Assembly (NCBI GenBank): GCA_965649765.1
Contig: OZ287752.1
Span: 53,630,001 to 53,694,000 of the forward strand
DNA: 64,000 nucleotides
DNA from: Bispira polyomma
Taxonomy: Eukaryota
Reading direction: 5' to 3'
In this document: one piece after another, positions 5,738 through 58,934 of the stretch
How positions within the stretch are numbered: position 1 is the first letter of the stretch
Layout of the letters: each line of letters opens with the position of its first letter
The notes under the pieces: generated by a model
Database searches by the model: none
What the model saw: only the letters and a program-made list of their open reading frames with translations
Told to the model about the DNA's origin: nothing
Program-made: the position numbers and the translations under genes

Positions 5738-6990
5738 ATGCATAGCAAGTCCACCCCAGGGGACTGCTAGTTCAGTCCAACCTCCTTTTTCTATCACACT
5801 ACCTTAATCCCTAGCGAATGCAATAGCATTATCCAACTTTCTGTCCATCTGGGCCTTGTCCAATCACAGCATTAGCTATTAGTGACCCCTAAGCTAGGAT
5901 AGCTATCCTCCATATTGAATTTGTGTTTTCACCTGTGAACAGGACATTTAGAAAAATTGAAACCCACCACCTCCCCTTACCACAGCGTTATTAAGGATTT
6001 ATAGAAATTTTAAGGTTCTCTGATGCATAAGGTTATCCAGGCAGGTTTGACGGCAACGTGGCGGCCGGGCTCCGAGCCGTGTGGGTCTGGGGTCCTTCCT
6101 TCTTACTCCCTCCTCTGAGTTAACCACTGGGATTCCAGAGTGGAATAAGGGGCTCTGAGAGGTTGGACTTCACCCTCCTAGGCGGTTGGTGTCCAGGGCC
6201 CGGGGTCCTGCTGTTACTACGTTGCATGTTCTCTCTTGCATGGACTTATTTTCAATTTATAAGCATAGTTGAACATTGACTCATATGGGGTTATAACATA
6301 CGCGACATTAGAGTGGTCAGCTTCATATGACTCAAGTTAACGATCCAAGGGACACTTACTGAGCTAGTTAATACCACTTGTTGAATAAGTAACACAACGT
6401 ACCAATTTAGACACAATGACGATAACTTGGGTACACGTGTGGTCCCCACAAGGGCACCTTTTTGTACACGATCACCTAGCGTCAATTAGTATCCATGTAT
6501 CACAAATACATGTCAGAATTTACAGTAAACAGGGAAGTTTATCCCCTGAAATTGTTCTTAGTATCTTAGTCACCAAAAGTAACTTTGTTGTATATTACAG
6601 TACATTATTCACACAATGAACTAGTTGAAGGTGATGTTAATGATAGTCATGTTTATAGTAATCAATGTATTTAAATGTGTTTTCCTCTTTTGAGGTTATT
6701 TTATTGGTTCTAATCCAAAGTCTGGTGTGACTGAGGGGTTTACACTATTCTTTATATTTGTGATTGTCTCTTAGCTTATTATTAGCTTTGTTATGGGTTT
6801 TTATTTTTGACCCGGCTGTATTTTATGGTAGCCGTGATGGGCTTAAAATTCCATCCTGAAATTTTAACTGACTTTGATTGTCAACCTGTACATAAGCTAA
6901 CATGTAAATAAAAACCTCAAATGCAATCTTTTACTGTCTTATAATAAACTTACTTATTAACTTATAACTTTTCACACCACCATTGGACTG
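5738..6990 (+). mobile_element. Non-coding solo derivative of an Ngaro/DIRS-like YR retrotransposon (copy 1)
   Basis: Starts with the GGGGACTG-N6-CAGTCC motif also at 37604. Contains CCCACCACCTCCCCT (as at 43186). Ends in a GGGCTTAAAATT...AATAAAA...TTATAACTT...TGGACTG segment resembling the B repeat of the 37.6-kb element. Near-identical inverted copy at 62838-64000. Confidence 0.65.
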
Positions 6991-15700: not shown

Positions 15701-18700
15701 ATTTTGCCAAGGGACTGTCCCTTCATTTATGAAGTAGTCCATCAATGTGTTCCTTTGCTGTTTTGCTATTTTGCCCCTAGATCGATTCCTATCGTTGGCC
15801 AATTGATCCCCCACCAGCTGCTCCTCAGACTCAGGCGGATCATCTTAAGGGCTGGGGTCAGTTTGAAGCCTACCAGAGGATGCTGTTGCATGGTCGTCAG
15901 TAGAAGTTGGAACCTGCTGACCAATATACCGAAGGCATTCTGGACAACCCCCTTCCCCTTGATATCCTGTAATTACAGATCCTTTGGCGGTTAGTCAGTG
16001 ATCTCTTGAAGTAGGGTTTCATCAACCAGGACTTCAGGGCGAAGGCGTCGTCCTCCAGCAGGAAGTAGTTGACAACACGTATGGATCCCTCAAACAGTGG
16101 TGCAGGTTTGGTAAGCCCGATTGATATGTCTTCCAACTGTTCTTTTACTTCCGAGTAGTTGAATATTTGTGCGCCGGAACAGGAATCACTGATGATGGCT
16201 ACATGTTTCCCGTCAATACAGCTCACAGAGTAAGGGATTTTCCATCAGTTTCTGTAGACTTCTTCCGGCTTCAGCCAGTCAGAGGGGTGGTTTGGCAGGC
16301 TAGATTTTCTGTCTTGTATTCCTAGATAATGGCTTTACAGAGCTCTTGGATGAACTTGGTAATGCTTGATTTTCCCACCCTGAACTGATATAACAGGGAA
16401 CTGTAGCTCTCGCTGGTGGCCAGGTGCAAGTTTAAATCCAACATCTAAGGGCTTTCTGTACCAGGTTGTGGCTTTCTTGATATGGCGTTTGATCCTCTCC
16501 TTGATTTCCTGGAATAGGACTGACCTTTTCCGATGGTGGTCTTGGTTTCAATTCCTGTTGAGCTTTAGCCTTGTCTCTTTGATGTTGTAGTACGAGCATG
16601 AGGGAACACATTTCTAATTCAAAAAAGACTAAACAATCCCCTAATCTCCTCAAATATTCTCTCTTGTCGATTGCTGGGATTATCCTCAATTAGTTACTCA
16701 ATATTACATAACTTTTAGGGCTCAAAAAGGGTATATATAGGGTCAGACAGCGTCCCGACTTTATTTTAAATTTTTTTTAATCCTATAGGTCTGGATCATC
16801 AATCTGTCAGATCATATTGCCAATACATTCGATCCTAGGGCAATAGGTCACATCCTATCGCCAATAGGTTCGATCCTACCTGGGTAGAGAAGGTCGGGAA
16901 ACCTTGGAGTTCAAGGTCGTACAACCTTTAAGTTTGATCAGGATCGGTGTCCCGTAAAAATGGGGTACAATGAGGTTGATTGGGAAGGTTGCCCCACTTT
17001 TTTATTTTCCCGCCCCCAAAAAATTTCATTGATATCTTGGCCCCGACCGCCCCAATCTTAAAGTCAGGCCCATTTTGCCAATCAAGCTTGAATGAGGAAC
17101 CACCACTTACCTTGCAGTAAACAAAATTATAATAATTGAAACATTTCCTGTCGGGTATGAATGTCGGTAAAATGTTATGTAACTGTTTAGGGGAATTAGT
17201 ATTACCAAACAATTGATACAGACTTGAGTAAAGATATATCTTCTACTATACCTGCTATTGCTTCATCATTATTTTCTCCAGATAATTTCTGGTCAACATC
17301 TGCATACCCTTGTAGTAAACAAAATAGTACCAAACAATTGAGATATTTCTCTTTTTTTAATTTAGAGTTAATTTTAAATATTATGCCACTGTTTCGTGTA
17401 TCTAGTACAACTAACCTGTTCCAACAGACTGAATATAAAATAGTACTAAAATAATATTTGTTTAACACATATTTTAGTGGGAATTGTATAGCTACCTGAC
17501 ATAGCAAAAGCGTCATCAAACCCAGCATTTTCTTCCCCGGAAGCTTTGTCTCTAAAAATATTACCATTACAGTCTACAATTGTATAAACATAAAATGTGC
17601 ATATAAGATGAAAACATAAGGACTGGTAATAATAAAGAGAGCAAACATATTTACTTACGGTACACCACTATTCAGACGTTCTTGCCCTGTAAATCACATT
17701 ACATAGTTTGATATTACAGTATACAATAAAATTGCAAGATTGTTTCGTGCAGTTTGCTACATGTCTGGCAGTATTTTATATGATATAAATTGTCCACCAA
17801 AATATGACACAACAAATAATAAAACTTTTATTGTAACTGAAAAATCTGTAAATTTACTGAAATAATAGTCTGACATAATAGTTTTTATTACGCTTAAAAC
17901 ACCTAAAATGACTTGCCTTCTTTTCTGAATAATTTATTAATTCCAAGTTTATTTCTGTGAAAAACCACCAATCCAACCACTACAATGATCACCAGGATTG
18001 CAATCAGAGGACCAATTATAGCACCTATGTTAACTCCATCTTAAATAAGACAAGAATTGAACATATCAATATCTACCTACTCACGTATCTGTATATAATA
18101 GACAAGTGTAGTCAAATAATTAAAAAAACGAAAAGGTTTTACCTGGTCTGTATATAGGTGGATCAATTCCTTGAACAAAGGTTGCCATTTGATTGTTTCC
18201 TTCATAGACTTGGACACTTACTGAATATGATGCTTTATCATCAAATTCATCTGGAATTGTAACTCGCTCTTGAGTTGCGTTTACCGTACCATTAACAGGG
18301 TACACATGACTGTTGGCTGTCCCTTCCGCACTATAATTAAACTTTAAGCCCACAGCTACTTCTACCCTTTCCGATCTCTGTTGATTATAATCCCAGGTTA
18401 TTATCATTTCACTCGAAGAAATTGAGTCGATTTGAACGTTTTTAATATCAGGTAGACCTAAAAATTTAAAATAAAAACATTCTACAGTATTTTTTTAAAA
18501 CTAGATTTAATACAAAAAGTGTACATATTGTTTGTTAATTTCACTTCATATCGATCAATGTAAATATCGGTCTAACAATTTAATAATTGGAACACTTCAT
18601 CAATTTAAATACAAGGTGATATTTTTGCTCATGCTGAATTCATTTAAATTATGTTTACCTACATATTGTATTTGGGCAAATCATAGCATTAAAATTAATC

Positions 18701-21700
18701 TCACCAGTATTATAATGACAATCAAAAAATAGCAAACATTTAAAAAGTAAAAATATTTTTGAAATCATATATAGTTAACATAGTTAGAACAGAGCATCAC
18801 ACCTGTCTGTATGTGTTACCTGTTGTTTTGCTGTCACAACTGCAAACATATTCATTTGTTGTATTTATTCCTGTCCTCTGATTCTCCCCATGTATACGTA
18901 TACAATATTCTGTATGTGGCTGCAGTCTTTCAACAAGTACCTGAAGATGTGTACCTTCTATACCTTCTTGAGAACCCCGAAATGTCTGTATATATTGAAA
19001 ACTTGTGTCTGGATTACAATCTGGTTGACTGTGTTCACCAGATTTAATGGTGTAAATGACTGGAGGCATATTGCCACTACGACCTTCCTTCCACTGCACA
19101 GTGAGGGAAGAAGAGGTCATATTCGGAAGAATATAAAGATCAGTTGGTGATTCTGCTGGTCCTATTCAAGTAAACAAAACACTTAAAAATTGAAATTTGG
19201 TTTAATTTGAATGGCTGAATACTAAAACTTTTAAATCCCTTAGACATCCAACTAGCAGTAAAAGAATATTGGAAAGCAAAATTATTTCTTTTTATATGTG
19301 AAGAAAAATATGGAATTGTATAAAGTAGTATATGTTAAGAATTCTTTAACAAAATAAACAAAGAAAAATTAAAAATATGTGAGCAATCATTTAAAATTAG
19401 TAAACATTAAACAATGAACTACCAACAAACAAATTACGATAACATACCCATATTAAATAGAAGATACATACAACACATTCACATACCAAGTTCTCTCAAT
19501 TCTAAAGGAAAAGCCACTGTTCCTACTGTATTATTAACTTCACAATAATAAAAACCGAATGTTGAGTCATTTGTGAAAGCAACAGTATAGTTTTTCATTG
19601 TAGCGCCACTAATCTGTGAGGCTGTATCTGTCCCATTGAAATACCACTGGTAATTTGGCATTGGATTTGCACAAACTGGGCACTGAAGCACAACATTTAA
19701 TTCTTCAAATTCTGCTGCTTGGTATTTTTTGTCAGAATTCCATATTGCAGCATCTGTTGAAAATGTATATATATTGTAATCCTTACATGTATGATTTATT
19801 GAAGAGTGTTAAAACCATATAATACTAGTAATAACAATAAGTAATGGATTGATACCCATTAAACATACAGTGTGTTTCCACTATAACCGAGTTTGAGATT
19901 TTGGTTTCTTCTTCTCCAGCTGTAGTAGCAGTTGCCACACATTGATATACACTGTCATAATACACAACCCCTTCACAAGTATCAAATTGATGCTCGGAAG
20001 CCTTCCAATAAGATTCAAGTTTGTGTGCTTTACTTAATCCATTACAACCATTTTCACAAGCAATATCATTGGTTTCAGTTCCAAAGTAACGTTCATCCAA
20101 TTGTTTGTCATTTTTTTTTATGTACACAGTATTGATATTACTTGCTGATATGACACATGACAAGTTAAAATCACTAGATGTAGTTCCATTATAGACAGGG
20201 TTGTCCATTGAGAGTTTGAATTCTTCAAAGCTCACAGGGGCTAGAAAAAGTAAAAGCATTCAAATATTTACACATGGAGTAAAAAATCAATGAAAATTAT
20301 ATGACTTGTCTTTTAATGTTGTAACTATTACTATAATACAGTATAGTACCATACTTAGGCAAAAATAAAGTAGTACAATCTGAAATACCTTCTACAATTA
20401 CGTCAATGTCTTTTGATGAATTACTTGGACCTATGAAATTTCCTGCAATACAGTGATATATTCCACTTTCTTTGACACTAGTTGGAACAAAATCTTCCCA
20501 ATTTGTTGTGCCATCAATAATAGTATAATTATGAAGGAAACTTCTATTACTGTGCCATGCAATCCAAGAAGCATCAGGAACTCCAATTTCATTGAGTGTA
20601 CTTAGGTCACAGTATAGGGTGTAAGATTTCTCTATAGATATCGTGGAATCAGTAATTGATGCAACTGGCTCACCCTTTGGTGTATCTTTTGAAACAATAA
20701 AAAGTTTAGGCTATAATACTTTGATATATATGTTATAAATTTTATATGTCATCTGTAAAAGCTGTAATGCTGTGATACTCGAACAAAATAGCAAAATATT
20801 TGACCTGCAAACAATATTATTAAGTCATCAATTGCCATATAATGTCTGTATAAATATATTTCAGTACATACACTGTACAATAACATTCACTGAGGAGATA
20901 TCACCATTTCTTTGAACATTGCCACCACATGCTTGAAATTCATTTTCTGCTGTACATGTGAACATTCCAGCATCCTTGTATGTGGTAGATTCAATGTTTA
21001 AAGTCTGGTTCTCCTGCGAACCTGTAGGGTAACTCCAACCATAATCTATAATATTTGGTCTGGCATCAGCATAACAAGTCAAAGACAGTGGATTTCCTTC
21101 AACTACCAAAGTGCTACCAGTGACATTTACATTTCGTGGATGATCTGAAATAGAATTAAGGAGATGAACAATCGATTTCACTTCAGTAATTATATGTAAT
21201 TACGAAAACACAATCTGTAAATATAACATATATACTCACTGTGCTTATATTTAAACATAAATACAGGACTATAAGGCAAATGTCACACCAGCATATACAA
21301 TGTAATGCACAATATTACTCTATAACTAAAGTTAATGATCTCTTCCTGTAAAATTTTACAGATGGGCTAGTGATTTATCCTTAATGGTAATTATTTATAA
21401 TTTTGAATTAGTTTGGTCGTATTCACAAGTTATTTAACACATTGATAAACATATTTTAGGCAAGTTCCTTATGTATATATACAGTGTTACGTATATATCA
21501 TTGAACCAATTTCATATACATATTTTCAAATATTCATAATTGAAATAATTATTTTTTAAAAGTTTTGTCTGGATACAATTGATAACAATAAAATTACTAT
21601 GCAATATTGAATAATGTTTTTAGTGTTTTTTTTAGGAAAAGCTACATTTATTCTGGCTTTCGTGTAATAAAATAGCTTTGGTAATTTTGAAATTTATTCC

Positions 21701-24700
21701 AATCACCAATGTTATGACAATTGGTCAAATACCATATTTACAACATCTGCAGAACACCAAAGAAAAACCTCAGCTAATCTCGATACTTATGTGACATTAG
21801 TATTTAAAACTGGTAAACAGGAACCACTATGATACAATAAACACTCTCCGTTTAATTTACTGTTCAAAGAAAACAAGATTGAAGTGTTAATATCACAAAC
21901 AAATAGCAGACTTCAAAATAGAATACTGAAGTTCACTGAAATAGTGCATATCATGTGTGATTATATAGTATTTCCCATTCCTCATCTAATTCCAGTCTGG
22001 CAAAAATAGCTGATACACAACATGTTATGAAATAGTATGTTGTAATGATAAAAATAAGTTACTTACAGAGAACCTGTACCATAAGGTGTGATGATATTTT
22101 CCCTTCTTCAATACCATTCACTGCAGAACAGGAGTAGTTACCAATATTACTTAACTGGCTTTGACTGGTATTATACCATTGTGATGTAATCCCTGTCAAT
22201 TCACCATTAAAATGCCTGTGGAGATGTAGCACACATGTACATTATAGCTGTAATGATTTATATTGATATTAATTTGCAAGTGTGTTTAAGGGGTTGGGGC
22301 CATCTTACGTCACTATTATTGTTAATGATGGAAAAAAATACATGGCCATTTATCCGCTTCTGCTGACATATTATTACATATTAATGTTGTCTGTATGATA
22401 AGTCAACATTATACTATACATTTTAATGACATTATATACAGTGAGCGATGCCCCCTCAAAGCTGTGCCTGTGGTACAGCTTTTAGTATTACTTATACATT
22501 AATAACATCGCCATCCATATACATAAGTCAAAACTTAAACAATGTGGATAATTTAACCATTTAGAAAGAAAGCATAGAGAGACTGATCTATTTTCAGCAA
22601 GTGAATCTTTACACAATTATTTACATAATGTTGTTACCACACATATGAATATACTGGTGGGTTGCCTTGTCTTGTTACATTGCACAGTAAGTTCAATGGT
22701 TTTTCTTCTTCCACAATATGCTGAAGTCTACATGGTCCAACTTCAACTTCTCCCCCATCTATAATTATTTTATTATTTTCAGGTATTATTATTGCACAAA
22801 AATTGTTGCCCTTGTATATTTGAAGGTATAGAGTCACTAATGTTGTATTTGGTCCTCTTATTAAATGCCTTTGATTTTCACCACCTATTTTTGTCCTTTT
22901 AACCAATTTTAGTTTGGAAAAGTTAATCGTGTATTCACATATTATCCAATTATATTATCTGCCATTACCACTGTGGCAATAATGGAAGATGAACAAGCCA
23001 CTTTTAAATCACAATAACAACTGACACTACTTGATACTATTCATGTTATTATTTCTAGAAAGTTATTTTTGGAGTTTTTAAAATTATTTATAAAATATTA
23101 AACTTGCAAGTAAAATCACTTACATAAAATGTTTAACTGATGACTGTCTATTCTTTGTTGCATTCCCTCCAGCTGTTTCACAATACAAGTTATATTTTTA
23201 CCATTGTCATCTCTCTGTGCTGAATATAGTAATGTACTTGAACCATTCCCAGGGGTGGCTTCATCGGTAATATTACTTCCATCTCCAATAAACCATTCAA
23301 ACTGTGCCGGTGGAAAACCACCCATAGAAGTACATGTAAAAGTTTCACTTGAAGTTATGGTGGTATTAAAATTACCTTCTAAATATGGGTCATCTGATAA
23401 ATCTGAAAAAAAAACATAACAGTTTAGTTATCATATATGTACACATATATATCAATAAAAAGTTGAAGTTTAAAGGCAATGTTACTCTAAAATATGTATC
23501 CACATTATTTACTACATAAACTATGTTTTCCATATTAATCTTGTGTATGATTATGCTATATAAACTATGGTAGCATTCTCATTAAAATCCAGAAAATAAT
23601 AGCTTAACGAAAAATACATTACTTTTATAAAATACTTGAGTATATTAAGTATTACTTTATATTTTCATTATCTGAAAATAAATAAAAAGCTCTTACCATA
23701 CACCTGAAGAAAATAAGTAGCATTTTCACTAGTCTCAAATCTACAGACCCAGTCTCCAGACATGCCAGTAGTTACTCCTGATACTGTGTATGATACACTT
23801 TTAGTTAAGTCAGGACACACTTCATCTACATTTGGTTCTGTGGAATCACATTTACAAGAACCTGGATCTATGTCATAATAACAGGCTTCATCTTGCAAAC
23901 AGTCAAATGTACAGCTTTGACCAGGCAATTGTCCAGGCCAGGCTATGCGCAAAAACTCAGACTCTGACTTTGGGGTATCTAAACTACAGTTTAAAGTTAT
24001 TGTGTCACCAATTTTAACAGATTGAGGTTGGATGGTAAATGTAAGACTGCAGCAGCCTGAAAATAATATAGTTATTTGACATTGTGAATAAATTTTGTGC
24101 CAGGTTAAACTGGTTAAAAATAAATGGTTAATTTTAAGGTGTACCAATCTGTACATTTGGAAAAAAGCCTTATCATTGTACAGCACAAATATTACAATAT
24201 ATATATTTCTATTAATATAATATTAAACAACCTTGACCACATTTTCATGTGTAAAAGTCATAACGTAATAGACAATTTCTGGAAATACAACTGATTCAGT
24301 TTTGAGTACCAGTAATCATAGCTAAATAGTTTGTGTTGAAAATATGACAATTACCGGAATATTCGCCAAAATTGTTGCAGAAAAAATGAAATATCAGGAT
24401 CAGTGTCTCACTCTAGCTTGTGAACTTGATTTTGTTAAAACATCACTGAAAAGATTGGTATGGGGCAGATGAGTTTATTACTATTTCTATATTTGATTTA
24501 CATACTGTAAAAATAGTAAACACATATAAAGTCATCTTTTACTGTATACTAACGATCAACTTTTTTATGAATCAATTTTATTGGGCAATTGTACGTACAT
24601 ACATACATAAGAATATATTTCTAAACTGCAAAACATTTCTTTGATCTCAATACAATGGAATGCCAGTAGCTTTGCTTACAATACTAGGAAATAGGTTTTT

Positions 24701-26925
24701 TGAAGACATCATACAGATCAAGTATACATCAAACTGGTTATATATGCATCATAATATATGTAAAAATAGAACCTCAAACTACATCTTTTACTGTAAAAAT
24801 TTTACCCTTAGACCTCTATCGCTAATCTCACCATCAGTGGACTGTGCACAAGAGGATCCCTTTAGGGGATTGCTAGTTCAGTCTACACCCATTAGCGAAT
24901 GTAATCATATAACTCATTTTATATCTATCCCTTTATTAACCAATCACATCAATTATCACCTGTGACCTCTACCTTTGATGTGCTATCCTTCATATTGCAT
25001 TCTGAACTCCACCAATTACATGCTTTATTTTGTGGTTTGCAGCCATACCATATTCAAATTTGGACTCCCTTATCTTGGGCGATCACAATGTAATACCTCT
25101 GTTCCACTATGCCAAACATGGCCCCCAATTGTTACGATTGTAAGATCGGAGCAATTATCGGGGGGTTCTAATGACTTTTCATTCCAATCGGGGAGGTCAC
25201 AGAGGTTTTCAAACATGTTTTGAGTCAGTGACTGACAATCTCAGATACCAGAACATAGACACTCCTGATCAGATCTCACCTCTTAATCCAGATGCACAGT
25301 AAACGAATTCCACCCTGAACACTCCAACCGAAGCTGTTCCAAGCAGCCAGCACCAGCAGCAACCACCAAGGTGTAGATACCAACCTCTCTTCCTCCTCCT
25401 CCTCCTCCTCCTGAGGTTTCTTCTTGGCTCAGTCTTAGGTGTAGACTCAAACTTGGTAGTTTTTCCAGGGCACTGCCCCCTCTTTGGTGAAATATTGCAT
25501 GAGTAGCTCTCTCTGTTCTTTTGCTGCCCTGCTGGGATTTCTACAGTTGGGTGGGTTGTTTCTTCCTACACGTGCTGCTATTGGTGGAACAGGTGAGTCA
25601 TCTTCTGGATTACCTGGATTAGCCATGTTGATAGCTACGGTCCTCAGTACATTGAGCAGGACCACACATGCTAAAGCTATGGTGGCCACCACTGATCGTT
25701 CCTGAATCCAGAGACCATTGACTTATCTTTAGCAATCGGGGAGGTCAGGAGCAAAAAAAATGTTGTCCTGACAACTAATCGGACCGATCAATCGTAATGC
25801 TAACAACTTATCGGGCGGTTATATGACTTATCTTACAGGTCGTGGTGATGCATATTCCCTCCATTTTTTCAAAAGATCGTTGGAAAATGCCAAAGATTGC
25901 TCACAATCATATTATCATATAATGCCCACCATTCGTGATAGTGTAACAGCACAGAAACGTTGAATTATTTAAAATATAAACAGCCCAGACAATATGCTGC
26001 TGCTCCCTCTCAGCTTTGTTTTAAGCATGTGCTACTTATTGCCTCTGGAATGTTTATATTTGACATTCTAAGGAATCCAAAGAATGCTGTGAGAAAAATT
26101 CATCTAAAGAGAGCAGGTTCCTTAGGAGAGAGCAAGGTTGTGATATTCTCAATAGCTGGTGGTCATTGAACACATCTTTTGGTGATGGCTTAAACGATAA
26201 CTCATGAATATTCTGTTATTCTGAACCAGGAATTCTAAAAAATACTATAACTGAATGGATTGTGATGTCCAGGGGACTCACATAGTAAATAAATGAAAAA
26301 AAAAGGTTTAAACTTGGTCCCTGTATACTTTAGTGGTTAAAGGTCGTAGTGTGGAATATTTTCAAAGCTGCCAGAGCCAGTGAAGCAGACACAGTAGTAT
26401 AACCTACAATTATACAGTGTAGTCAAGGTTAAAATATTTAAGTGGAATATGTCTAAATGTGAGGTTGTCTAGAGTTCCAACTATGTCTTCTAAGACATGG
26501 AGTAGGTGAAAAAAATGTGGTGGTGTTAGTGGTGTGCCGTTGCTACCCGTTTTCTCTTCTACTTTTTGAAGCCATTTAGTGATTTAGTTTTTAAATGCTT
26601 CTAAGAGACGCAAAATGGAGAGCATTTCTGAGAAGTTTTGCTGTTCTAACTCAGAAGTGAGATTACCTGTAGCTTGAGTTTGTACAGTGGTTGGGGATCT
26701 TCTTGATATTCAGCAATATTTGGCATCACAAACAAAAATATAAGTCAAAATATGGTCCAACAATCTTAATTGATATAATTATTATATACTCATTCTCAAT
26801 GCATCTTGGAAATATAGTATAAGGCGTTTGGAAATACAAGTGCAGGGTTTTGGTAAAATAAATATGAACTTACCTATTTGTACAAGTGAACAAATTACAT
26901 ATCCTGCGAAGAATGTGCTCTTCAT
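9549..26925 (-). CDS. Gene A: IgSF receptor, SP + 7 Ig + 2 FN3 + TM + ITIM/ITSM-bearing tail (nephrin/hemicentin-like architecture), ~1197 aa, 20 exons
   Basis: Exons (minus): 26874-26925, 23697-24056, 23124-23402, 22638-22758, 22067-22215, 20872-21144, 20389-20685, 19869-20240, 19487-19753, 18820-19161, 18143-18457, 17917-18039, 17659-17686, 17496-17551, 17252-17308, 11766-11810, 11591-11656, 11215-11289, 10701-10789, 9549-9776. All have AG acceptors and GT donors (one GC), phases chain correctly, total 3594 nt, no internal stops seen. Confidence 0.88.
10701..10789 (-). CDS. Gene A tail exon (NPYDDV, KPTIAAKPK)
   Basis: tgtgcag|GT GAC AAT CCA TAT GAT GAT GTT...CGG|gtatgt. Confidence 0.8.
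10863..11171. mobile_element. PIF/Harbinger (Tourist-like) MITE
   Basis: ~24-bp TIR (core CTGGTCACACCTACACGTGCT) with 3-bp TSD CTA/CTA; same family as 34006-34616. Confidence 0.8.
11215..11289 (-). CDS. Gene A tail exon (DAYAQVDKK)
   Basis: gtacag|GT GAT GCT TAT GCC CAG GTT...ACA G|gtatgt; 75 nt, phase 1-1. Confidence 0.8.
11591..11656 (-). CDS. Gene A tail exon (ITIM VTYAEV)
   Basis: ttttttacag|AT ACT GCA GCT GTC ACA TAT GCT GAG GTT...GCG G|gtactg; 66 nt, phase 1-1. Confidence 0.8.
11766..11810 (-). CDS. Gene A tail exon remnant interrupted by Harbinger (DVDKKPSEYTIKATS)
   Basis: Paralogous to exon 17252-17308. Donor CAG|gtatca intact; original acceptor stranded at 17111-17112. Confidence 0.55.
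12463..13370 (+). pseudogene. Harbinger Myb/SANT-like (MADF) DNA-binding protein, disrupted
   Basis: EEAVVEFVKDNKVLYHKRHKQFKDRFLKERLWEDLA...VKTWFESQCTR..KKSGQGA; in-frame stops and frameshift. Confidence 0.8.
12615..12761 (+). repeat. 21-bp minisatellite x7 (GGGATTGATGGAATCGTGCCA), coding GLMES(C/S)Q
   Basis: Seven adjacent units, in frame within the MADF ORF. Confidence 0.92.
13368..13632 (+). mobile_element. 3' fragment of an LTR nested in the Harbinger
   Basis: Reverse-complement match to 54626-54882; ends ...GTGACCGTAACA; contains AATAAA. Confidence 0.7.
13891..14120. repeat. ~110-bp tandem repeat, ~2.2 copies, inside the Harbinger
   Basis: AAACAAACAGAT..CAATTCACACATAC..ATATCATTGGCCC..ATATTAGCC repeated. 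Confidence 0.8.
15697..16440 (-). pseudogene. Harbinger DDE transposase (HARBI1-like), disrupted
   Basis: HLATSESYSSLLYQFRVGKSSI, CIDGKHVAI, DDAFALKSWLMKPY, NYRISR..NAFGILVSRF, GTVPWQ; frameshifts and an internal deletion. Confidence 0.85.
17252..17308 (-). CDS. Gene A tail exon (GYADVDQK)
   Basis: tactacaag|GG TAT GCA GAT GTT...GCA G|gtatag; 57 nt. Confidence 0.75.
17496..17551 (-). CDS. Gene A tail exon (DKASGEENAGFDDAFAMS)
   Basis: tttttag|A GAC...TCA G|gtagct; phase 2-1. Confidence 0.7.
17659..17686 (-). CDS. Gene A 28-nt micro-exon (QERLNSGV)
   Basis: tttacag|GG CAA...CC|gtaagt; phase 1-2 bridges its neighbours. Confidence 0.7.
17917..18039 (-). CDS. Gene A transmembrane exon (IGAIIGPLIAILVIIVVVGLVVF-HRNK)
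   Basis: Hydrophobic stretch followed by basic residues; GC donor AAG|gcaagt. Confidence 0.85.
18143..18457 (-). CDS. Gene A FN3 domain 2
   Basis: PDIKNVQIDSISSSEMIITW...SYSVSVQVY; canonical splice sites. Confidence 0.85.
18820..19161 (-). CDS. Gene A FN3 domain 1
   Basis: PAESPTDL..TSSSLTVQW..LQPHTEYCIRIHGEN. Confidence 0.9.
19487..19753 (-). CDS. Gene A Ig7
   Basis: LQCPVCANPMPNYQWYFNG...FGFYYCEVNNTVG. Confidence 0.9.
19869..20240 (-). CDS. Gene A Ig6 (atypical)
   Basis: FNLSCV...YDSVYQCVA; canonical splice sites. Confidence 0.88.
20389..20685 (-). CDS. Gene A Ig5
   Basis: YTLYCDL..GVPDASWIAW..ESGIYHCIAGNFIG. Confidence 0.88.
20872..21144 (-). CDS. Gene A Ig4
   Basis: EGNPLSLTCYADARP..YGW..DAGMFTCTAEN. 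Confidence 0.9.
22067..22215 (-). CDS. Gene A Ig3 second half
   Basis: HFNG...GNYSCSAVNGI; ccacag| acceptor, |gtaagt donor. Confidence 0.85.
22638..22758 (-). CDS. Gene A Ig3 first half
   Basis: EEEKPLNLLCNVTRQGNPPVYSYVW (TG|G split codon). Confidence 0.85.
23124..23402 (-). CDS. Gene A Ig2 (CD80-like C2-set)
   Basis: TFTCTSMGGFPPAQFEW...RDDNGKNITCIV. Confidence 0.9.
23697..24056 (-). CDS. Gene A Ig1 (V-like, Cys-rich)
   Basis: GDTITLNC..IAW..MSGDWVC; ttttcag| acceptor, |gtaaga donor. Confidence 0.9.
24836..25090 (+). mobile_element. 5' terminal fragment of an Ngaro-like YR element
   Basis: TGCACA..CCCTTTAGGGGATTGCTAGTTCAGTC as at 37585 and 5739; AGCGAATG.AAT and GCTATCCT.CATATTG shared with 5810-5920. 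Confidence 0.55.
25094..25953 (-). mobile_element. Internally deleted PIF/Harbinger derivative in gene A intron 1
   Basis: Transposase C-terminus at 25447-25692 (IALACVVLLNVLR...QRELLMQYFTKEGAVPW); imperfect TIR CTGTT(C/A)CACTAT. Confidence 0.65.
26874..26925 (-). CDS. Gene A signal-peptide exon (MKSTFFAGYVICSLVQIG)
   Basis: ATG...ATA G|gtaagt, phase 1; joins Ig1 to give MKSTFFAGYVICSLVQIGCCS-LTFT. Confidence 0.75.
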
Positions 26926-27370
26926 ATTGTTGAATGGAATGGCATAGGATGGATGTTGTAAAAACTTGTTATATGCTCGGGTATTTCCCATCAATACACC
27001 ATTTAATCATTTAATACGTTAATGTCATCAAGTTAAATCTATTCACAGCTTGACAAATACGAATGCAGATAAGTATAATATACAGATAAGTACATCAGAA
27101 ATGATAACAGTAGAAACAAGAACAGTAATTAAAACATGATGTAGTATGAAAGTTCCCCGTTGCAAATTTACATGAATAATTTCCATGTGAAAAAGCACAT
27201 ATCCTTGTAATAAATTATAAAACAATTGTTTTGGCCTACGAAATAGTATTAGCGCTACAGTAGTGGTGTTTTATTATTGTCTTAACTTATATGGCAGTGT
27301 AGCTCAAAGTTCACAGCGACTTTGATAACACATATTTTCAGTGTACTGCAGTTTTGCCTATAAGGTAAAC
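26926..27370. promoter_or_regulatory. Putative bidirectional promoter between genes A and C, with kappaB-like sites
   Basis: 445 bp between divergent ATGs; GGGTATTTCCC (26979-26989) and GAAAGTTCCCC (27148-27158). TSSs are not visible from sequence. Confidence 0.45.
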
Positions 27371-29306
27371 ATGGATTGTATTAATTTTGGAGCAAAGTAT
27401 ATCTTTGGAGTTTTGTTGTTTTCATACTCTGCAGGTAAATTCATTTTTATATAAGTTTTATTGTCCGTTAATAATATAATTGATATGAAACTGAAATATG
27501 GTTCAGAATAGGATAAGCTTCTAAGCATGTAAGGTAATACATATGAAATCACATTTTATTTTCTTGCTCTATGCATACAGTAGCAGAAGGGCAATATCAA
27601 ATAATATAAAAAAATTGTTCTATAAATTATAGATGGTAGATAATGTACATCTAGACAAAATATTTTTTACTTATTATGTAGAAAAGCTATGTTATTATAT
27701 ACTTGAGTAAATCTGATAAAATACCTTATTCTTAGCACATCTAGTGTGGCCTTTTTGCTTTTCTCTTGAAAGGCATACTTGTCAAGTTTTGCATAATTAA
27801 ACGTTATTTGTACCTCAATTTAGAAATTGTTGTTACACATTTTCTCTATTACACAGTTTGTCAAGAAGTTAGAATCAAAGGAATCCAGAAGCACAATGAA
27901 ACAGCAGTAATATCATGTTATTTTGACAACAAAGTCCCTTATGAAGTTTTTTGGTACTTACAAAGCCAAGAAATGACAAGATATTGTACCATTACTGGAG
28001 GGAGTAAAATATTGATACATTCAAACAACTGTAGTCATTCGGATATTGGGGAAGCAAATTATGAATTTATCATTGACAGTTTGGACATTGGGAGAGACAA
28101 GGATAAAATGTGGCTTTGTCGTTTTGGTTCAACAGATCTTCATCTTAACATCAGTTTTGACGACCGTAAGCAGGATATTTCCACATAAAAATAATGTCTA
28201 GTAATATCACTAGTTATGTATAGGTTACTTATTAAATAGAAATGAATCAGTAATTGATTTAATATTTAGTTGATGTATTTTTGCTGCCTGGTTATAAATG
28301 TCTTAAATAGGGATGTTTTTATGCTATATTATTTTCCCTTGACCAGTGAGTGTATAATTCGCCTTAAGGATTTATTTGCAAAAGTGTCTACCACATATTT
28401 TACACATATACATTTTGTGGTTTTATCTATATATAACCTGAAACAACTATAAATATTAATTATATCGAAACAACCTGAAAATTAAGGAAATATATTTCAG
28501 AGCGTGTGGAAGAAACAAATATTCACCTTGAAATTGATGTTCAAACTGATTATTATAAGGGTGACCCAATTTCCATGGGAGTGAACATAGATTGCGCTTA
28601 TCCACCTCAGCCTGTGATATGGTGCCTCGTTGTTAATGACTATGACAGATCATGTTCAAATGAACCTGATTATTGGAATACATATTTTCAGGCCGAGCCA
28701 GTTATCACTGAAACATTTCGTTCCTGTGAACCGTCTTATGGAACTGACATAGTGAAGTCTCTGGAAAGTAGATTTAATGGAACATTTGCCAATTATGAAA
28801 TGGCAGATACAAGTTTATCATTTGAAATACTGGTAAATGGCATTACTGTCCCAATGGAGTCAAATGGAAAATCGGTTACTGTTAACTTCTGCTGTGGTAA
28901 GTCACAACAACAGACATATTCAAATTTTAAATAAATGTTGAAACCTCTGAGCAACTACAAATTTACAAAATTAGCTTATACAAATGTAGATAAATCGAAA
29001 ATATGTTCAATTTAAACAAATATGGAAGTATAAATTGGTAATATATATTTATAATGTTGCACTCAAATATTATCTTTTACAGTGAGCTTCTCAATCTTCA
29101 TTTATAGCATAATTGTTTAACAACATAATATGGAATGATCTCAAATATATTTTTATTGCAAGTGTTATTATTCATACTCTGTTTCAGATTCCTTATCAGC
29201 TGGGGCTATAGTTGGTATCGTGATTGCTGCATTACTAGTAACAATACTTGTTCCTCTTGGGATATATTGCTTTGTATTCCGCGAGAGCAGTAACCACACA
29301 ACATGA
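27371..29306 (+). CDS. Gene C: small type-I membrane protein, SP + 2 Ig-like domains + TM + 8-aa tail, 295 aa
   Basis: Exons 27371-27434, 27857-28165, 28501-28896, 29188-29306; all GT-AG, phase 1. SP MDCINFGAKYIFGVLLFSYSAVC; D1 ISC..FW..WLC; D2 CAYPPQPVIW; TM AGAIVGIVIAALLVTILVPLGIYCFVF. Confidence 0.88.
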
Positions 29307-29552
29307 ACTGAAGGACAACAGAATATTTGAGACGTAACTGTTATCATTGTCAATATGTTATTGTTTTAAATACATATTCGTTATTACACAAGATTTTTGT
29401 AAGATTGTTGTCACACATAAATGTAATATTATTAATGATTGTTTAGATATGATATGTTAATTTGAATGAATTATCAATGTCGAGCTATTAACAAAAACTT
29501 TAGATTTCAGCTGATATTAGGACTGTTTCTGCTTCTATATAACACACAGTAG

Positions 29553-51274: not shown

Positions 51275-51560
51275 CTTGTATTTTCTTATCTTGTGTTACA
51301 TTGCTGGAGTCTTACATTTACCATTGAACCTAAATATGTTGAAATCGGTGGCACAATAACTTTAAACTGTAGTCTAGATACCCCAAAGTCAGAGTCTGAG
51401 TTTTTTCGCATACATAGCATAGCTTGTATTTTCTTATCTTGTGTTACATTGCTGGAGTCTTACATTTACCATTGAACCTAAATATGTTGAAATCGGTGGC
51501 ACAATAACTTTAAACTGTAGTCTAGATACCCCAAAGTCAGAGTCTGAGTTTTTTCGCATA
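51275..51560 (+). repeat. 138-bp tandem duplication with CATAGCATAG filler
   Basis: 51275-51412 = 51423-51560. Confidence 0.92.
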
Positions 51561-53974
51561 GCCTGGCCTGGACAGTTGCTTGGTCAAATCTGTACAGTTG
51601 ACTGTTGGTTGGATGAAGCCTGTTATTATGACATAGATCCAGGTTCTTGTAAATGTGATTCCAAAGACACAGATGTAGGCAGACCTTGTCCTGAATTAAC
51701 TGAAAGTGTATCATACACAGTATCTGGTGTAACTACTGACATGTCTGGAGACTGGCTCTGTGAATTGGAGACTAGTAAAAATGCTACTTATTCTCTTCAG
51801 GTGTATGGTGAGAGTATTTTCTTTTATTTTCACATTATGGAAATATAAAGTAATACATAATATAGTTAATTATTTTATAAAACATTTACACACACAAACA
51901 CAGGAAAAACTTTAGTTTATACTAATATGTAAGTATTTTTATTATAACCTGTTATTTTCTGGATTTCCATGTGAACATTTTTGCTACCATAGTTTATATA
52001 GCACAATCATATATAGATGAGATAAATATGGAGAACATGGGTTATGTAGTAAGTAATGTGATAATATATTTTAGAGTAACACTGCCTTAAGACTTAAACT
52101 TTTTATTTCTATATATGTGTACATAATTATATGATAATTAAACTGTTATGTTTCTTTTCAGATTTATCAGATGAACCATATTTAGAAGGTAATTTTAATA
52201 CCATTATAAATACAAGTGAAACTTTTACATGTACTTCTATGGGTGGTTTTCCGCTGGCACAGTTTGAATGGTTCATTGGAGATGAAGTTGACATGTGTAA
52301 TGTTACTGATGAAGCCACCCCTGGGATTGGTAAAAGTACATTACTCTATACAGCACAGAGAAATGACAATGGTAAAATATGACTTGTGTTGTGAAACAGC
52401 TGGAGGGCATGCAACAGAGAATAGACAGTTATCAGTTAAACATTTTATGTAAGTGATTTTACTTGCAAATTTTTATGTTTATATAATAACTCAACCACAA
52501 ATAGAGCTTACTAGTAATAATAGCATGAATAGTATTAAGTAGTTTCATTGTATGGTGATTTAAAAGTGGATTGTTTATCTTCCAGTATTGCCAATGTCGT
52601 AATGCCAGATAACATTACTAAATAATATGTGAATACACAATTAACTTTTAAAAATTGTAATTGGTTAAAATACCCAAAAAAGGCTGACAATTAAGGACAA
52701 GTAATCAGAAGACAAAATACTCCAATATTACCAAAACAATACCATCAAGCATGCAATGGCAACAGTTTTGTACAATATAAATACCTGGAAATATTAAAAT
52801 AATTACACATGGAGGAGAAGTTAAAGTTGGACCTTGTAAACCTAAGCATAGTGTAGAAGAAGAAAAACCATTAAACTTACTATGCAATGTAACAAGAGAA
52901 GGCAACCCAACAGTGCATTCATACATGTGTTAATAACATTATGTAAATGATTGTGTAAATAATTACTTGCTGAAAATAGATCAGTCTCTCTATGTTTTAT
53001 TTCTAAATGGTTAAATTATTCAAATCTTTTAAATTTTGACTTGTATATGTATATGGATGGCACCATTATTAGGGTACAAGTAATGATAGAAGCTTCGAGG
53101 GGGTATCCCTCACAATATTTAATGGTATTAAAGTGTATAGTATGATGTTGACCTACCAAGCAGACAACATTAATATGTAATAATATGTGAGCAGAAGCGG
53201 ATAATGGCCATGTAGTTTTCCATCATTTACAAAAATAGTGGCTTAAGATGGCCTGAACCCCTTAAACACACTTGCAGAATAATATCAGTATAGATAATTA
53301 CAGCTATAATGTGTGCTACATCTCCACAGGAACTTTAATGGTGAATTGGCATCGTTCACAACACCAACATTTTCTGTCAGCCAAAGCCAGTTAAATAATA
53401 CTGGTAACTACTCCTGTTCTGCAGTGAATGGTATTGAAGAAGGGAAGATATCATCACACCTTATGGTACAGGTTCTCTGTAAGTAACTTATTTGTATCAT
53501 TACAATATACCATTTCATAACAGGTTGTGTTTCAGCTTATTGTCTGAAGACTGAAAATTAGCTGAGGAATGGTAAATGCTAAGTAGTCACACATGATCTG
53601 CACTATTTCACAAACAGAATACTTTACAAGTAAAATTCATTATTATATTTTGAAGTCTGCTATTTGTTGTGATATTATCTCTTCATCCTTGTTTTCTTTA
53701 AACAGTAAGTGAAACGAAGAGTGCTCATTGAACAATAGTGGGTTACCGTTTATCAGTTTTGAATACAAATGTCACATAAGTACTGAGATTGGTCTTTTAT
53801 AGATGGTCTGCAGATGGTGTAAATATTGTATTAGAACAACTCTCATAACATTGGTGATTGGAATAAATTTCAAAATCACCAAAGCTATTTTAAAACACGA
53901 AAGACAGAATAAATGTAGCTTTTTCTAAAACAAAATACTAAAAACTGAGTATGATTCAATATTGTATAGTAACT

Positions 53975-55735
53975 AGGTTGATTAGGAGCTGATTAGGTTT
54001 TGGGGGTATCTGGCAACAACTGTTGCCATGGCAACGCTTTTAAGATTTTGGGATCTTAAACTTTGAAGGTGTTCCACAGGCTAAATCCATGCATGGATTT
54101 TCACCAAATTTTTAGCATATGTTTACCCTGAGAGGATCTACTAAGATTTTGGGGGTCTTAAACTTTGTGAGTGTCACACAGCCTAAAGCAATGGATGGAT
54201 TTTCAAAAAATTTTCATGAAAGGTTTGGGTTCTGTATACTTCTAACTTTTTAACTTATTCCTTACATTTTACCAAATCTCAATGTTGTTGCCCATTTTAG
54301 TTGTACCTGTAGGCTGGGGTTTCTGCCTGCTGAGGCTTGTTATTATTTTTTAATCCCAGCCCACAAAGGCTGGGGTCATAATCGTTGCCTGCGCCGTACG
54401 AGCGGCATCGGTGGAAGCGGCGGGCATAAACTTTGTGGATGTTCCACATGCTAAACCCATGTATATGTTTAACCCACTATATGTTTACACCAAGAGGATC
54501 TACAGCTGTTTAGGTTTTCTGGGGTATCTGGGAGCCACTGTTACCATAGCAACGCTTTTAACATTTTGGGGTCTTAAACTTTTTGCGTGTCCTACAGGCT
54601 ACACCCATGCATGGATTTTGACCAATGTTACGGTCATGGGAGCTAGGCGGTAGCAATTACTGGTTGCTTTCAAGTTGTAACAGGAAAAGACAAAAAGTTC
54701 CACTTAAATTTATTTAACAATTAAAATAATAATTACACAATTATAGAATTACACAATTACAGTCAACTGAGATACCCTTAATAGTTCATACAATAATGAA
54801 ACCAATCTGACCTGACCACAGTCCTGTCCACGTAAATAACAATTAAACAAGTTTGTCCATTGTATCCAGCAATCTGTCTTGAGATCCGCTCGGTGTCCAC
54901 TAACACACAATGCCTGTATCCTGTTATCCGTGCGGTCAACGAACACAAAATGTATATATACAGAGAGTCTGCACAACAAAGCTATTTAGTCCAGGATGCA
55001 AAAAATATCCAATATGCAGCAAACCTAATCTCTGGTAGATCCGCAACTTTATATCCAGTTCACTCCAATGAGTTCACCACAAAATGTATATAATAATCAG
55101 TTTATATCCACAGGAAAAGAAATAAAATGTTTCACAGAATAGCAGTTCATATAGCACATCAACTCAATAAACTCTAGTCTGTGGCCAGGCTTTAAACCCT
55201 TATATATACCACTGCTAGAGAAGGCTCTAGAATATATAAACAATTCCTAGAAGATTCCAGAATGAGATATAAACATATTAACACAACTTCAATAACAACA
55301 GAAACAAAATAAAACCAGCTTCTAGAAGCATAGGGGTTTTCCCAAATCTATAAATAGATCACTCTAGCAGAGTGTAAGAAACATCATTACTAACCAGACC
55401 AGTTCTCCACTGACATACAACAATGTCCTTATATGTAAGACCAAATTTTCAGGATATGTTTACCCTAAGAGGATCTCGAGCTAATTAGGTATTGGGAGAT
55501 ATCTGGCAACAACTGTTACCATGGCAACATTTTTAAGATTTCGGGGTCTTAAACTTTGTGGGTGTTCCACAGGCTAAAACAATGGATGGATTTGCACCAA
55601 ATTTTAATGATAGGTTTGGGTTCTGTATACTTCTAACTTTTTAACTTATTCCTTACATTTTACCAAATCTCAATGCTGTTGCCTATTTAGTTGTACCTGT
55701 GGGCTAGGGTTCCTGCCTGTCGAGGCTGGCTATTT
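53975..55735 (+). mobile_element. Helentron-associated non-autonomous elements (HINE/DINE-like): truncated copy 53975-54340 plus full copy ~54351-55732
   Basis: Subterminal IR CCCAGCCCACA / TGTGGGCTAGG, 3' palindrome GCCTGTCGAGGC, T-rich flanks, ~150-bp internal core repeats; absent from the equivalent gene A intron. Confidence 0.75.
54626..55440 (-). mobile_element. Solo LTR (815 bp) nested in the HINE
   Basis: TGTTAC...GTAAGA ends, 4-bp TSD CCAA; minus-strand TATA (~55200) and AATAAA (~54708). Confidence 0.78.
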
Positions 55736-55953
55736 TTGGGACTGTTGGTGTTATATTTTGAACTATATAAGCATGACAATTATATTGTGTCAGTGGATAA
55801 AACATGTGAAACAACTCTTGTGGTGTATATTAAAAATATATATGACTCAAGAAGATAAAACACACAAAACTCGCCCTGCCGGGCTCATATTGCATCGATT
55901 ATCTTATTTCGTCATATATTTTAAAATATACATCACTGAGATAGTGTTACTAT

Positions 55954-55991
<38 letters not shown>

Positions 55992-57584
55992 AATTTTACA
56001 GTAAGGGATCATTAACTTTATTTATAGAGTAATATTGTGCATCAGACTGTATAAGCTGGCGTGACTATTGCCATATAGTCCTGTATTTAGGTTTTTATAT
56101 AAACACAGTGAGTATATATGTTATATTTACAGATTATGTTTTTGTAATTACATATAATTAGTGAAGTTAAATTAATTGTTCATCTCCTTAATTCTATTTC
56201 AGATCATCCACAAAATGTAAAAGTCACTGGTGGCACTTTGGTAGTTGAAAGAAATCCACTATCTTTGACTTGTAATGCTGATGCTAGTCCAGATACCATA
56301 GAATATAGCTGGACTTATCCCACAGGCTCACAGGAGGGACAGACATTAGTCATAGGATCTATCACACACAATGATGCTGGAATGTTCACATGTATAACAA
56401 AAAATGAATTTGAACCATGTGGTGGCTATGTTCAAAGGGATGGTGACAACTCCTTAGTGAATGTTATTGTACAGTGTATGTAGTGAAATATATTCATACA
56501 TATACACGTATTAGATGGCAATTGATGACTTAATATTGTTATGTTTGCAGGTCAAATATGTTCACTTTTGTCCGAGTATCACAGCATTATATTTTATACA
56601 GATGACATTTAATGAGTAGAACATAGGTAATATATATATATTATAGCCTTAACTTTTTTTTTGTTCTAAAAGATACACCAAAGGGTGAGCCAGTTGCATC
56701 AATTCCTGATTTTACAATATCTATAGACAAATCTTACACCTTATACTGTGACCTAAGTACACTCAGTAAAACTGGAGTTCCTGATGCTTCTTGGATTGCA
56801 TGGCACAGAAATGGAGGTTTTCTTCACAATTATACCTTTATTGATGACACAACAAATTGGGAAGATTTTGTTCCAACTAGTGTGACAGAAAGTGAATTAT
56901 ATCACTGTATTGCAGGAAATTTCATTGGTCCCAGTAATTCATCAAAAGACATTGACATAATTATAGAAGGTATTTCAGATTGTACTACTGTTTTTGGTGA
57001 TTGTATTATACTATACTGTATTATACTAATAGTTAAAACCTTAACAGACAAGTCATGTAATTTTCATTTTTTTTTCACTCCAAGTGTAAATATTAGAATG
57101 CTTTTACTTTGTCTAGCCCCTGGGAGCTTTGAAGAATTCCAACCCTCAATAGACAACCCTGTCTATAATGGAACTATATCTAGTGATTTTAACCTATCAT
57201 GTGTTGTATCAGCAAGTAATATCAATGATGTGTACATTGAAAAAAATGACAAACAGTTGGATGAACTTTACTTTGGAACTGAAACCAGTGATATTGATTG
57301 TGAAAATGTTTGTAATGGATTAAGTAAAGCACACAAACTAGAATCTTATTGGAAGGCTTCAGAGCCTCAATTTGATACTTGTGAAGAGGTTGTGTATTAT
57401 GATGGTGCATATCAGTGTGTGGCAAGTGCTACTACCGCTGGCCAAAGAGAAACAGAAATCTCAAACTCGGTCATTGTGGAAACATACTGTATGTTTAATG
57501 GGTATCAATTCATTACTTACTGTTATTACTGTCATAAAATGTAATTTAAATTATTGAGTGATAAAAACTGTTTTAATATACTTT

Positions 57585-57589
57585 AGTAT

Positions 57590-57648
<59 letters not shown>

Positions 57649-57664
57649 ATATATATATATATAT
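57585..57664. repeat. (TA)n microsatellite
   Basis: Long TA run. Confidence 0.95.
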
Positions 57665-58540
57665 TTTAAACAGATGCTGCAATATGGAATTCTGACAGAA
57701 AATACCAAGCAGCAGAATTTGAGGAAGTGAATGTTCTGCTTCAGTGCCCAGTTTGTGCACATCCAGTTCCAAATTACCAGTGGTATTTCAATGGGACAGA
57801 TTCAGCATCACATATCAGTGGAGCTACAATGGAAAACTATGCTGTTACTTTCACAAATGACTCTACATTTGGGTTTTACTATTGTGAAGTTAGTAATGCA
57901 GTAGGGACAGTGGCATTTCATTTAGAATTGAGAGAACTTGGTATGTGAAAGTGTTGTATGTATCTTCTATTTAATATGGATATGTTATAGTAATTTATTT
58001 GTTAGTAGTTCATTGTTCAATTGATACTCATTTTAAATGATAGCTCACATATGTTAGTTTTTTTTTGTTCATATTGTTAAGGAATTCTCTTCTGAGAAAC
58101 AGTATTATTTATTGATATTAATTTATACAATTTCATATTTCTCCTCATGTAATATTCTTTTACCGCTAGTTGGATGTCTAAGGAATATAAATGTGTGAGT
58201 ATTGAGCCATTAAAATTAAAACAAATTGCAATTTTTAAGTTTTTTGTTTACTCTTATAGGACCAGCAGAATCACCAACTGATCTTAATATTCTTCCGAAT
58301 ATGACCTCTTCTTCCCTCACTGTCCAGTGGAAGGAAGGTCATAGTGGTAATATGCCTCCAGTTATTTACACCATTAAATCTGGTGTACACAGTCATTCAG
58401 ATTGTGGTGAAGACACAAGTTTTCAATATATACAGACATTTCAGGGTTCTTAAGAAGGTTTACAAGGTACACATCTCCAGGTACTTGTTGAAAAACTGCA
58501 GCCAGATACAGAATATTGTATACGTATGCATGGGGAGAAT

Positions 58541-58934
58541 CAGAAGACAGGGATAAATACAACACATGAATATGAATGCATGTGTGACAGCATATACAAA
58601 AGTATGTATATCAAAATAAATATCCACTGTATTATTTACTTTCATAGACTATTGATTATAATATGCATATATGCATATGTGACAACAAAGCAGCAAGCAT
58701 GTATGTCAAAATAACTACCCACTGTATTACTTACTCCCAGAAGACAGGGATAAATACAACACATGAATATGAATGCATGTGTGACAGCATATACAAAAGT
58801 ATGTATATCAAAATAAATATCCACTGTATTATTTACTTTCATAGACTATTGATTATAATATGCATATATGCATATGTGACAACAAAGCAGCAAGCATGTA
58901 TGTCAAAATAACTACCCACTGTATTACTTACTCC
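58541..58934 (+). repeat. 197-bp tandem duplication across the FN3-1 donor site of gene B
   Basis: 58541-58737 = 58738-58934; CA microhomology at the junction. Confidence 0.92.

Follow-up and report, generated by a model that had tools for sequence, protein, structure and literature searches.

A head-to-head pair of immunoglobulin-domain genes, a long-tailed receptor and a small partner, recurs in a gene cluster of a probable annelid

The window analysed here is a stretch of 64,000 nucleotides, free of N, from a chromosome of 88 Mb in an animal assembly of 1.035 Gb (C5:53,630,001-53,694,000). It carries two genes whose 5′ ends face each other, gene A coding for a long receptor with immunoglobulin (Ig) domains and gene C coding for a small Ig partner. 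The host animal is probably a segmented worm (annelid). We find that this head-to-head receptor/partner module is repeated in the genome and present across species, and that it is previously undescribed; our literature search, which covered few subscription journals, found no such pair described in annelids or molluscs. A and C appear to be an old, tightly linked pair whose back-to-back arrangement has survived deep duplications and speciation. The long retention is supported by the recurrence of the unit in four lineages of this genome, in a second species (species 2) and probably also in a third genome. With a probability of about 0.38, we favor the reading that C is the non-signalling dedicated partner of A, a 'self' ligand acting in trans and encoded by a divergent two-gene module.

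Both gene models were predicted from splice signals and open reading frames; single exons served as input for the database searches and folds, and no RNA run was found to contain the locus. Gene A comprises 20 exons and 1,197 amino acids (aa), and its spliced frame is open throughout. The predicted protein consists of a signal peptide, seven Ig and two FN3 domains, one transmembrane (TM) segment and a 228-aa tail with motifs of the immunoreceptor tyrosine-based inhibitory (ITIM) and switch (ITSM) type:

26874..26925, minus strand: first exon, coding for the signal peptide, with the ATG at 26925 and a phase-1 GTAAGT donor; species 2 has a comparable exon upstream of its A-type Ig1
23697..24056, minus strand: Ig1, Cys-rich V-like domain in a single exon
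19487..23402, minus strand: Ig2 to Ig7 in seven exons, Ig3 being split over two
18143..19161, minus strand: FN3 domains (Pfam), two exons
17917..18039, minus strand: TM exon with a GC donor, no charged residue in the TM segment
9549..17686, minus strand: tail of 228 aa in eight predicted exons, with two ITIM-consensus and one ITSM-consensus motifs and six YxxV/I in total

According to Pfam the ectodomain is built of V/C2/I-set Ig and FN3 domains and contains no TIG domain. Ig2 retains the core Cys, Trp and Cys. We found no juxtamembrane Cys in A and no hemITAM in its tail.

Gene C codes for 295 aa in four exons, also with an open spliced frame, and ends about nine residues after the membrane:

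27371..27434, plus strand: exon 1, signal peptide, ATG at 27371, phase-1 GT donor; a homologous exon is present in species 2
27857..28165, plus strand: exon 2, the single exon of D1, a V-type Ig domain that has an additional Cys pair
28501..28896, plus strand: exon 3, Cys-rich D2 with two juxtamembrane Cys at its end (low-confidence model)
29188..29307, plus strand: exon 4, TM helix, tail of about nine residues without tyrosine motif, stop

The fold of C-D1 was modelled with AlphaFold2 from nine homologues at a mean predicted local distance difference test score (pLDDT) of 94. Its top match is Necl-2 (Z 12.4, root-mean-square deviation 2.0 over 93 residues), DIP and CD200 come next, and V-set domains in the Atlas align with template-modelling scores of 0.66-0.75. 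C-D1 also carries the B- and F-strand Cys and the C-strand Trp, and it has a V-type Ig fold. The closest folds (Necl, DIP, CD200) are heterophilic adhesion domains, and the neighbors of C-D1 in the Atlas are mostly from mollusc clusters. For C-D2 the model is all-beta and poor (pLDDT 43), its Ig-like neighbors are weak (highest Z about 6, with many C1-type matches) and the canonical F-strand Cys is missing; the domain may be a constant-type Ig sandwich. Pfam gave no match for either domain and the Atlas none for C-D2. The juxtamembrane cysteines of C are conserved. The TM exon of C in the window (29188-29307) is unlike the Cys/Trp-starting TM exon common to its paralogues C2 and C3 and to the C genes of species 2. 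These other C proteins have tails of 35-45 aa which end in a conserved PPKNxY motif.

Exactly 445 bp lie between the ATG of A (26925, minus strand) and the ATG of C (27371, plus strand). The first-pass annotation of this DNA had placed the two genes head-to-head with ATGs about 445 bp apart, had both signal-peptide exons pointing away from the gap, and had called the genes a long-tail/short-tail pair. The coordinates bear this out. The exons at 26874-26925 (minus) and 27371-27434 (plus) both have a phase-1 donor, and the predicted tails are 228 and about nine aa long. The gap contains the following features:

26926..27370, no strand: A-C gap of 445 bp, putative bidirectional promoter, no alignment with the gaps of other units
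27237..27281, no strand: dispersed repeat fragment of 45 bp that bears a small hairpin and has at least 16 further copies in the genome
26979..26989, no strand: Rel/kB-like near-palindrome, a weak lead, matched in 1/300 shuffles with the pattern picked post hoc
27066..27091, plus strand: tandem pair of GATA-type sites with a spacing of 17 bp, enrichment not significant

The same annotation had taken the gap to be free of transposable elements and had read this as a sign of a constrained shared promoter. The 45-bp repeat, whose further copies are spread over seven chromosomes with 84-94% identity and at which the depth of public contigs increases, contradicts the first statement. Its copies have constant boundaries, and here it is located 90 bp upstream of the C ATG. 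Nor is a short repeat-poor gap informative on constraint, because 83% of the 445-bp stretches beginning in non-repeat DNA of the window hit no detected repeat either (the repeat list of the window is a lower bound). What remains of the claim of a shared promoter and tight linkage is drawn from the recurring pairing with short gaps. The kB-like near-palindrome is missing from the gaps of the other units, and no kB-like, GATA or CRE motif is common to the gaps of different units. A bacterial promoter scan of the gap was disregarded as the host is an animal. No good splice acceptor was found within 300 nt upstream of the A ATG. A possible acceptor lies 36 nt upstream of the C ATG, thus a distant non-coding C exon is possible. 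Altogether we consider it probable that A and C share one short bidirectional promoter.

Genome-wide profile searches, which score only the best candidates, placed all significant homologues of C and of A-Ig1 within one cluster of about 230 kb (C5:53.65-53.88 Mb) and no C-like locus outside. We therefore analysed 264 kb of contiguous DNA (C5:53.63-53.894 Mb; positions in kb are C5 minus 53,630,000). Seven of the seven C-like loci are on the plus strand, and each directly faces an A-like 5′ end on the minus strand:

in the window, plus strand for C: unit U1, the A1/C1 pair (A and C of this text), gap 445 bp, the only intact C
79.6 kb, plus strand: decayed D1, facing an A-like 5′ end
117 kb, plus strand: C2, frameshifted
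162 kb, plus strand: C3, D2 damaged at a TA run
102, 188 and 194 kb, plus strand: decayed C copies, duplicates of the heads of C2 and C3

The seven loci collapse to four old lineages, among which Ig1 is 27-34% and C-D1 37-45% identical. Unit U3 has a gap of 320 bp between its ATGs; its receptor A3 keeps an open frame of 1,062 aa and ends in a short tail with two YxxL motifs. The signal exon of the U2 receptor has an acceptor but no ATG; a candidate first exon deeper in the gap would leave the ATGs about 56 bp apart.

The receptor bodies of the cluster are of two types, either seven Ig and two FN3 domains or three Ig and two FN3 domains; the latter type, with a TM segment, is present in five copies at C5:53,705-53,863 kb. 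Four bodies are 73-94% alike in Ig2 and only about 30% alike in their Ig1 exons, one of which is A3-type and one A1-type. The Ig1 exon, presumably the ligand-binding one, has thus been swapped among receptor bodies. Maximum-likelihood trees of Ig1, Ig2, D1 and D2 gave no well-supported branch, and co-evolution is therefore read from pairwise identities only. The long tail of A has no paralogue, and the only intact C adjoins the only long ITIM/ITSM tail. This arrangement fits the pattern of paired receptors in which the inhibitory member retains a self ligand.

Word searches with the alignments of C-D1 and C-D2 gave no matches, and relatives came from a large profile search. Three relatives of C-D1 are on long contigs of the ENA sample ERZ22147071, our species 2, whose genes differ from those of the window by a synonymous divergence of at least 0.9. 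Two further candidates were not accepted as C orthologs: P0006 is a repeat protein and P0007 a two-domain protein of a snail (E 5e-4). The three C genes of species 2 have the same four-exon layout as C, and on two of the contigs an A-like Ig1 exon with its signal exon stands head-to-head with C. Ig1 of species 2 is 50-51% identical to A1 versus 30-37% to A3 and D115 (another receptor of the cluster), and its C-D1 is 55-56% identical to C1 versus 43-45% to C2 and C3. The partners in species 2 are thus cognate, A1-type Ig1 opposite C1-type genes. Between the species the ratio of non-synonymous to synonymous substitution rates (dN/dS) is 0.14-0.32 for A and 0.27-0.55 for C. Both genes are thus under purifying selection, and the latter values show that C is a constrained coding gene. 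The cluster was rearranged in species 2 too, where a receptor body of A type (Ig6-FN3, with 55-80% identity to A) is inverted against a truncated A head.

A third genome is represented by a Logan contig of 1.3 kb (ERR12380048). It codes for a D1 with 31% identity and a C signal exon, and on the opposite strand for a signal-peptide-like exon whose ATG is 337 bp away; the contig breaks off before the putative partner becomes recognizable. Signal-peptide-like exons arise by chance at 0.02-0.03 per kb, and the chance of this match is about 1-2%. The contig probably carries a head-to-head pair with a 337-bp gap. Short gaps (445, 320 and about 337 bp) occur where both 5′ ends look intact.

Two Ig1 copies of species 2 differ by eight non-synonymous changes and one synonymous change. 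Together with the single intact pair amid many relics, which recalls the tgrBC cluster of Dictyostelium, this would speak for the strictest form of our favored reading, namely a highly polymorphic lock-and-key locus for allorecognition with matched alleles, in line with the self-marker role that the first-pass annotation had inferred. We think this quite unlikely. These counts are low, and one copy of the two is a pseudogene. Moreover, the sample is the DNA of one animal in the form of contigs that drop variants; the public contigs at the locus come from one study, are identical to the assembly and show no second allele. We also know of no allorecognition phenotype in the host animal, which counts against this form as well.

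We suggest that the favored mechanism would proceed in the following steps. One short promoter shared by A and C would drive their divergent transcription. C, a small surface protein without a signalling tail, would be bound in trans by the N-terminal V-like domain of A. Engagement of C would then lead to phosphorylation of the ITIM/ITSM-type tail of A, and the phosphorylated tail could dampen the response of the cell, a signal meaning 'self, do not attack'. The weak profile alignment of C-D1 with A-Ig1 and the heterophilic character of the nearest folds of C-D1 count in favor of this reading. That A and C bind each other directly seems to us slightly better than an even bet. The trans orientation, the inhibitory output and the immune setting are what we infer from the layout. 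A more far-reaching scenario is doubtful. It holds that a protostome, probably an annelid, independently evolved a linked and co-transcribed Ig ligand-receptor pair in which the ITIM/ITSM receptor A reads the tail-less C for self recognition, and that the sister receptors with swapped Ig1 and other tyrosine tails form a paired activating or decoy-sensing arm.

Several observations weigh against the favored reading. Some of the seven C-like loci are duplicates of one another and thus not independent, and Ig1 and C are adjacent and hence duplicate together through closeness alone. Six of the A-like 5′ ends have no C opposite them, and the receptors A3 and D115 are still open-framed though their C is broken. 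Among close paralogues dN/dS of Ig1 is raised (0.5-0.8) yet below 1. The gap DNA has no alignable element in common with the gaps of the other units and species. In species 2 the gaps measure 7,024 and 10,672 bp and have transposon DNA inside; as the A copies there are frameshifted or have only Ig1-Ig2 left, these lengths are uninformative on the constraint of a working pair. Finally, the 26 kb upstream of the third C of species 2, which is intact, contain no A head.

Much of this would be expected if an ancient inverted duplication had merely placed two V-domain genes back to back, held together by a shared promoter or by passive linkage while each of them binds something else. C-D1 and A-Ig1 do align in a profile comparison, weakly (E 2.8e-4, probability 41%) and with the extra cysteines included, which suggests an origin of the module by inverted duplication. 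That receptors outlast their C partners and that one intact C of species 2 stands without A agree with mere linkage, too, and divergent gene pairs without protein interaction are common in animal genomes. Since Ig1 and C adjoin and duplicate together, such co-regulation or linkage without binding explains the geometry almost as well as a dedicated ligand does. Against it, the pairing with short gaps has outlived both the alignability of the gaps and the reshuffling of the receptor bodies, and this genome contains no lone C. We regard this rival, with co-regulation or mere linkage but no binding, as somewhat unlikely.

Alternatively, A and C could form a heterodimer on one cell, in which C shapes the specificity and A supplies the tyrosine motifs, as proposed for the FF/FcoR pairs of Botryllus. 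The genomics is similar to those pairs (head-to-head genes duplicated as pairs, tail-less and ITIM members, unpaired receptors), a shared promoter would place both proteins on the same cell, and the conserved juxtamembrane cysteines of C could serve such a complex. The two ectodomains are nevertheless very unequal, nine domains versus two, and this difference of seven domains would fit a ligand in trans better than a side-by-side pairing. A has neither a matching juxtamembrane Cys nor a charged TM residue, A3 and D115 have kept open frames with no intact partner left, and the TM exon of C1 is not that of the other C genes. For these reasons we prefer the trans ligand and think a cis co-receptor unlikely.

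A neural or developmental adhesion code of the Dpr/DIP, nectin/Necl or SYG-1/SYG-2 kind, instead of an immune function, is in our view quite improbable. The best fold matches of C-D1 are indeed Necl and DIP domains, and receptors with Ig and FN3 domains are typical of neural adhesion. Fold neighbors do not reveal function, though, and against such a code stand the birth and death of genes in the cluster, its many pseudogenes, the swapped Ig1 exons, the differing tyrosine tails and an identity of only about 50% to a related species.

Other features of the window and the cluster are the following:

25100..25900, no strand: high-copy transposon fragment inside intron 1 of A; its open reading frame suggests a Harbinger-like element
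51275..60443, plus strand: gene B, an inverted and broken paralogue of A with frameshifts and lost splice sites

For gene B we found neither a signal exon nor a C partner. In its Ig1 (51275-51560) the start of the Ig exon together with the acceptor is tandemly duplicated (148 bp, 100% identical), and Ig2 of species 2 shows the same. The tails of B (59728-60443) and A3 are short and carry YxxL motifs, as opposed to the long ITIM/ITSM-type tail of A, which is the layout of paired receptors. The A-C-B block is flanked by two inverted copies of a 1.2-kb element (5733-6990 and 62838-64000), 99% identical, a recent insertion. Upstream of Ig1 copies without C, a gene which we take to resemble a GNAT acetyltransferase is present in two copies 81% alike (C5:53,842-53,846 kb and 53,882-53,886 kb).

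Among known molecules, CD200 consists of a V domain, a second Ig-like domain, a TM segment and a tiny tail, and is a ligand of inhibitory and activating receptor relatives. C has the same arrangement, a likeness of layout and fold; CD200R has two Ig domains only, and unlike A and C the genes of CD200 and CD200R are not back to back. The Hydractinia Alr proteins form a cluster of single-pass molecules with V, I-set and Fn3-like domains, tails with ITIM or activation (ITAM) motifs, exon shuffling and pseudogenes (bioRxiv 10.1101/2022.03.04.482883). The cluster described here is similar in its single-pass Ig/Fn3-type proteins, tyrosine-motif tails, shuffled exons and pseudogenes. Alr Ig domains lack the core Cys-Trp-Cys pin, whereas C-D1 and Ig2 of A keep it. 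NKRP1 and CLEC2 are genetically linked receptors and ligands that are related in fold and include both inhibitory and activating members, and the human genes for NKp80/AICL and NKp65/KACL are arranged tail-to-tail 3-7 kb apart (PMC3819593). A and C share with them the linkage of a putative receptor and ligand of related fold; unlike these C-type lectins of type II they are type I proteins with Ig and FN3 domains. Chicken BNK was not stimulated by its neighbor Blec (PMC8813856), thus linkage alone is no proof of binding.

The first-pass annotation had compared the pair to tgrB1/tgrC1 of Dictyostelium, whose head-to-head genes share a short promoter and code for one signalling tail and for IPT/TIG or E-set repeats (PMC13648343), with extreme polymorphism and allele-specific binding in trans (PMC13648343). 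The analogy holds for the head-to-head layout, the one signalling tail and the one intact pair amid relics and unpaired paralogues. It does not extend to the domains, which in A and C are V/C2/I-type Ig and FN3 without TIG, and by layout the FF/FcoR genes of Botryllus are closer, indeed the closest system. These are head-to-head pairs of the Ig superfamily, one member carrying ITIM or other tyrosine motifs and the other a short tail free of them, and are proposed to be heterodimeric receptors, not ligand and receptor (PMC12582321). Their copy number varies by pairs, unpaired receptors exist and intergenic recombination occurs; FF consists of Ig, Sushi and three TM helices and FcoR of Ig-Sushi-Ig-Ig (PMC12582321). 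A and C likewise are head-to-head Ig superfamily genes that duplicate and disappear pairwise within a cluster shaped by birth and death, with a tail-less member (C1, about nine aa without motif) and an ITIM member (A, two ITIM and one ITSM). In contrast to FF/FcoR, the C exons and the scanned A exons gave no Sushi match, C has one TM helix, A has seven Ig and two FN3 domains and no hemITAM (FcoR has ITIM/hemITAM), and the first Ig domains of A and C are single exons, so that there is no 3:1 exon rule. Because of the missing Sushi domains, the single TM helix and the absence of the 3:1 rule the pair is outside FF/FcoR, and it belongs to neither this family nor tgrB1/tgrC1.

In summary, the A/C pairing resembles, by analogy, the linked gene pairs for self recognition in sea squirts and slime moulds. 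Such gene pairs are known so far from a slime mould, a tunicate and the natural killer (NK) cell loci of vertebrates; if the favored reading is true, the 'back-to-back pair' solution would have arisen independently once more, and the small family in a single cluster with one intact pair would be a tractable case for ITIM-based missing-self recognition in protostomes.

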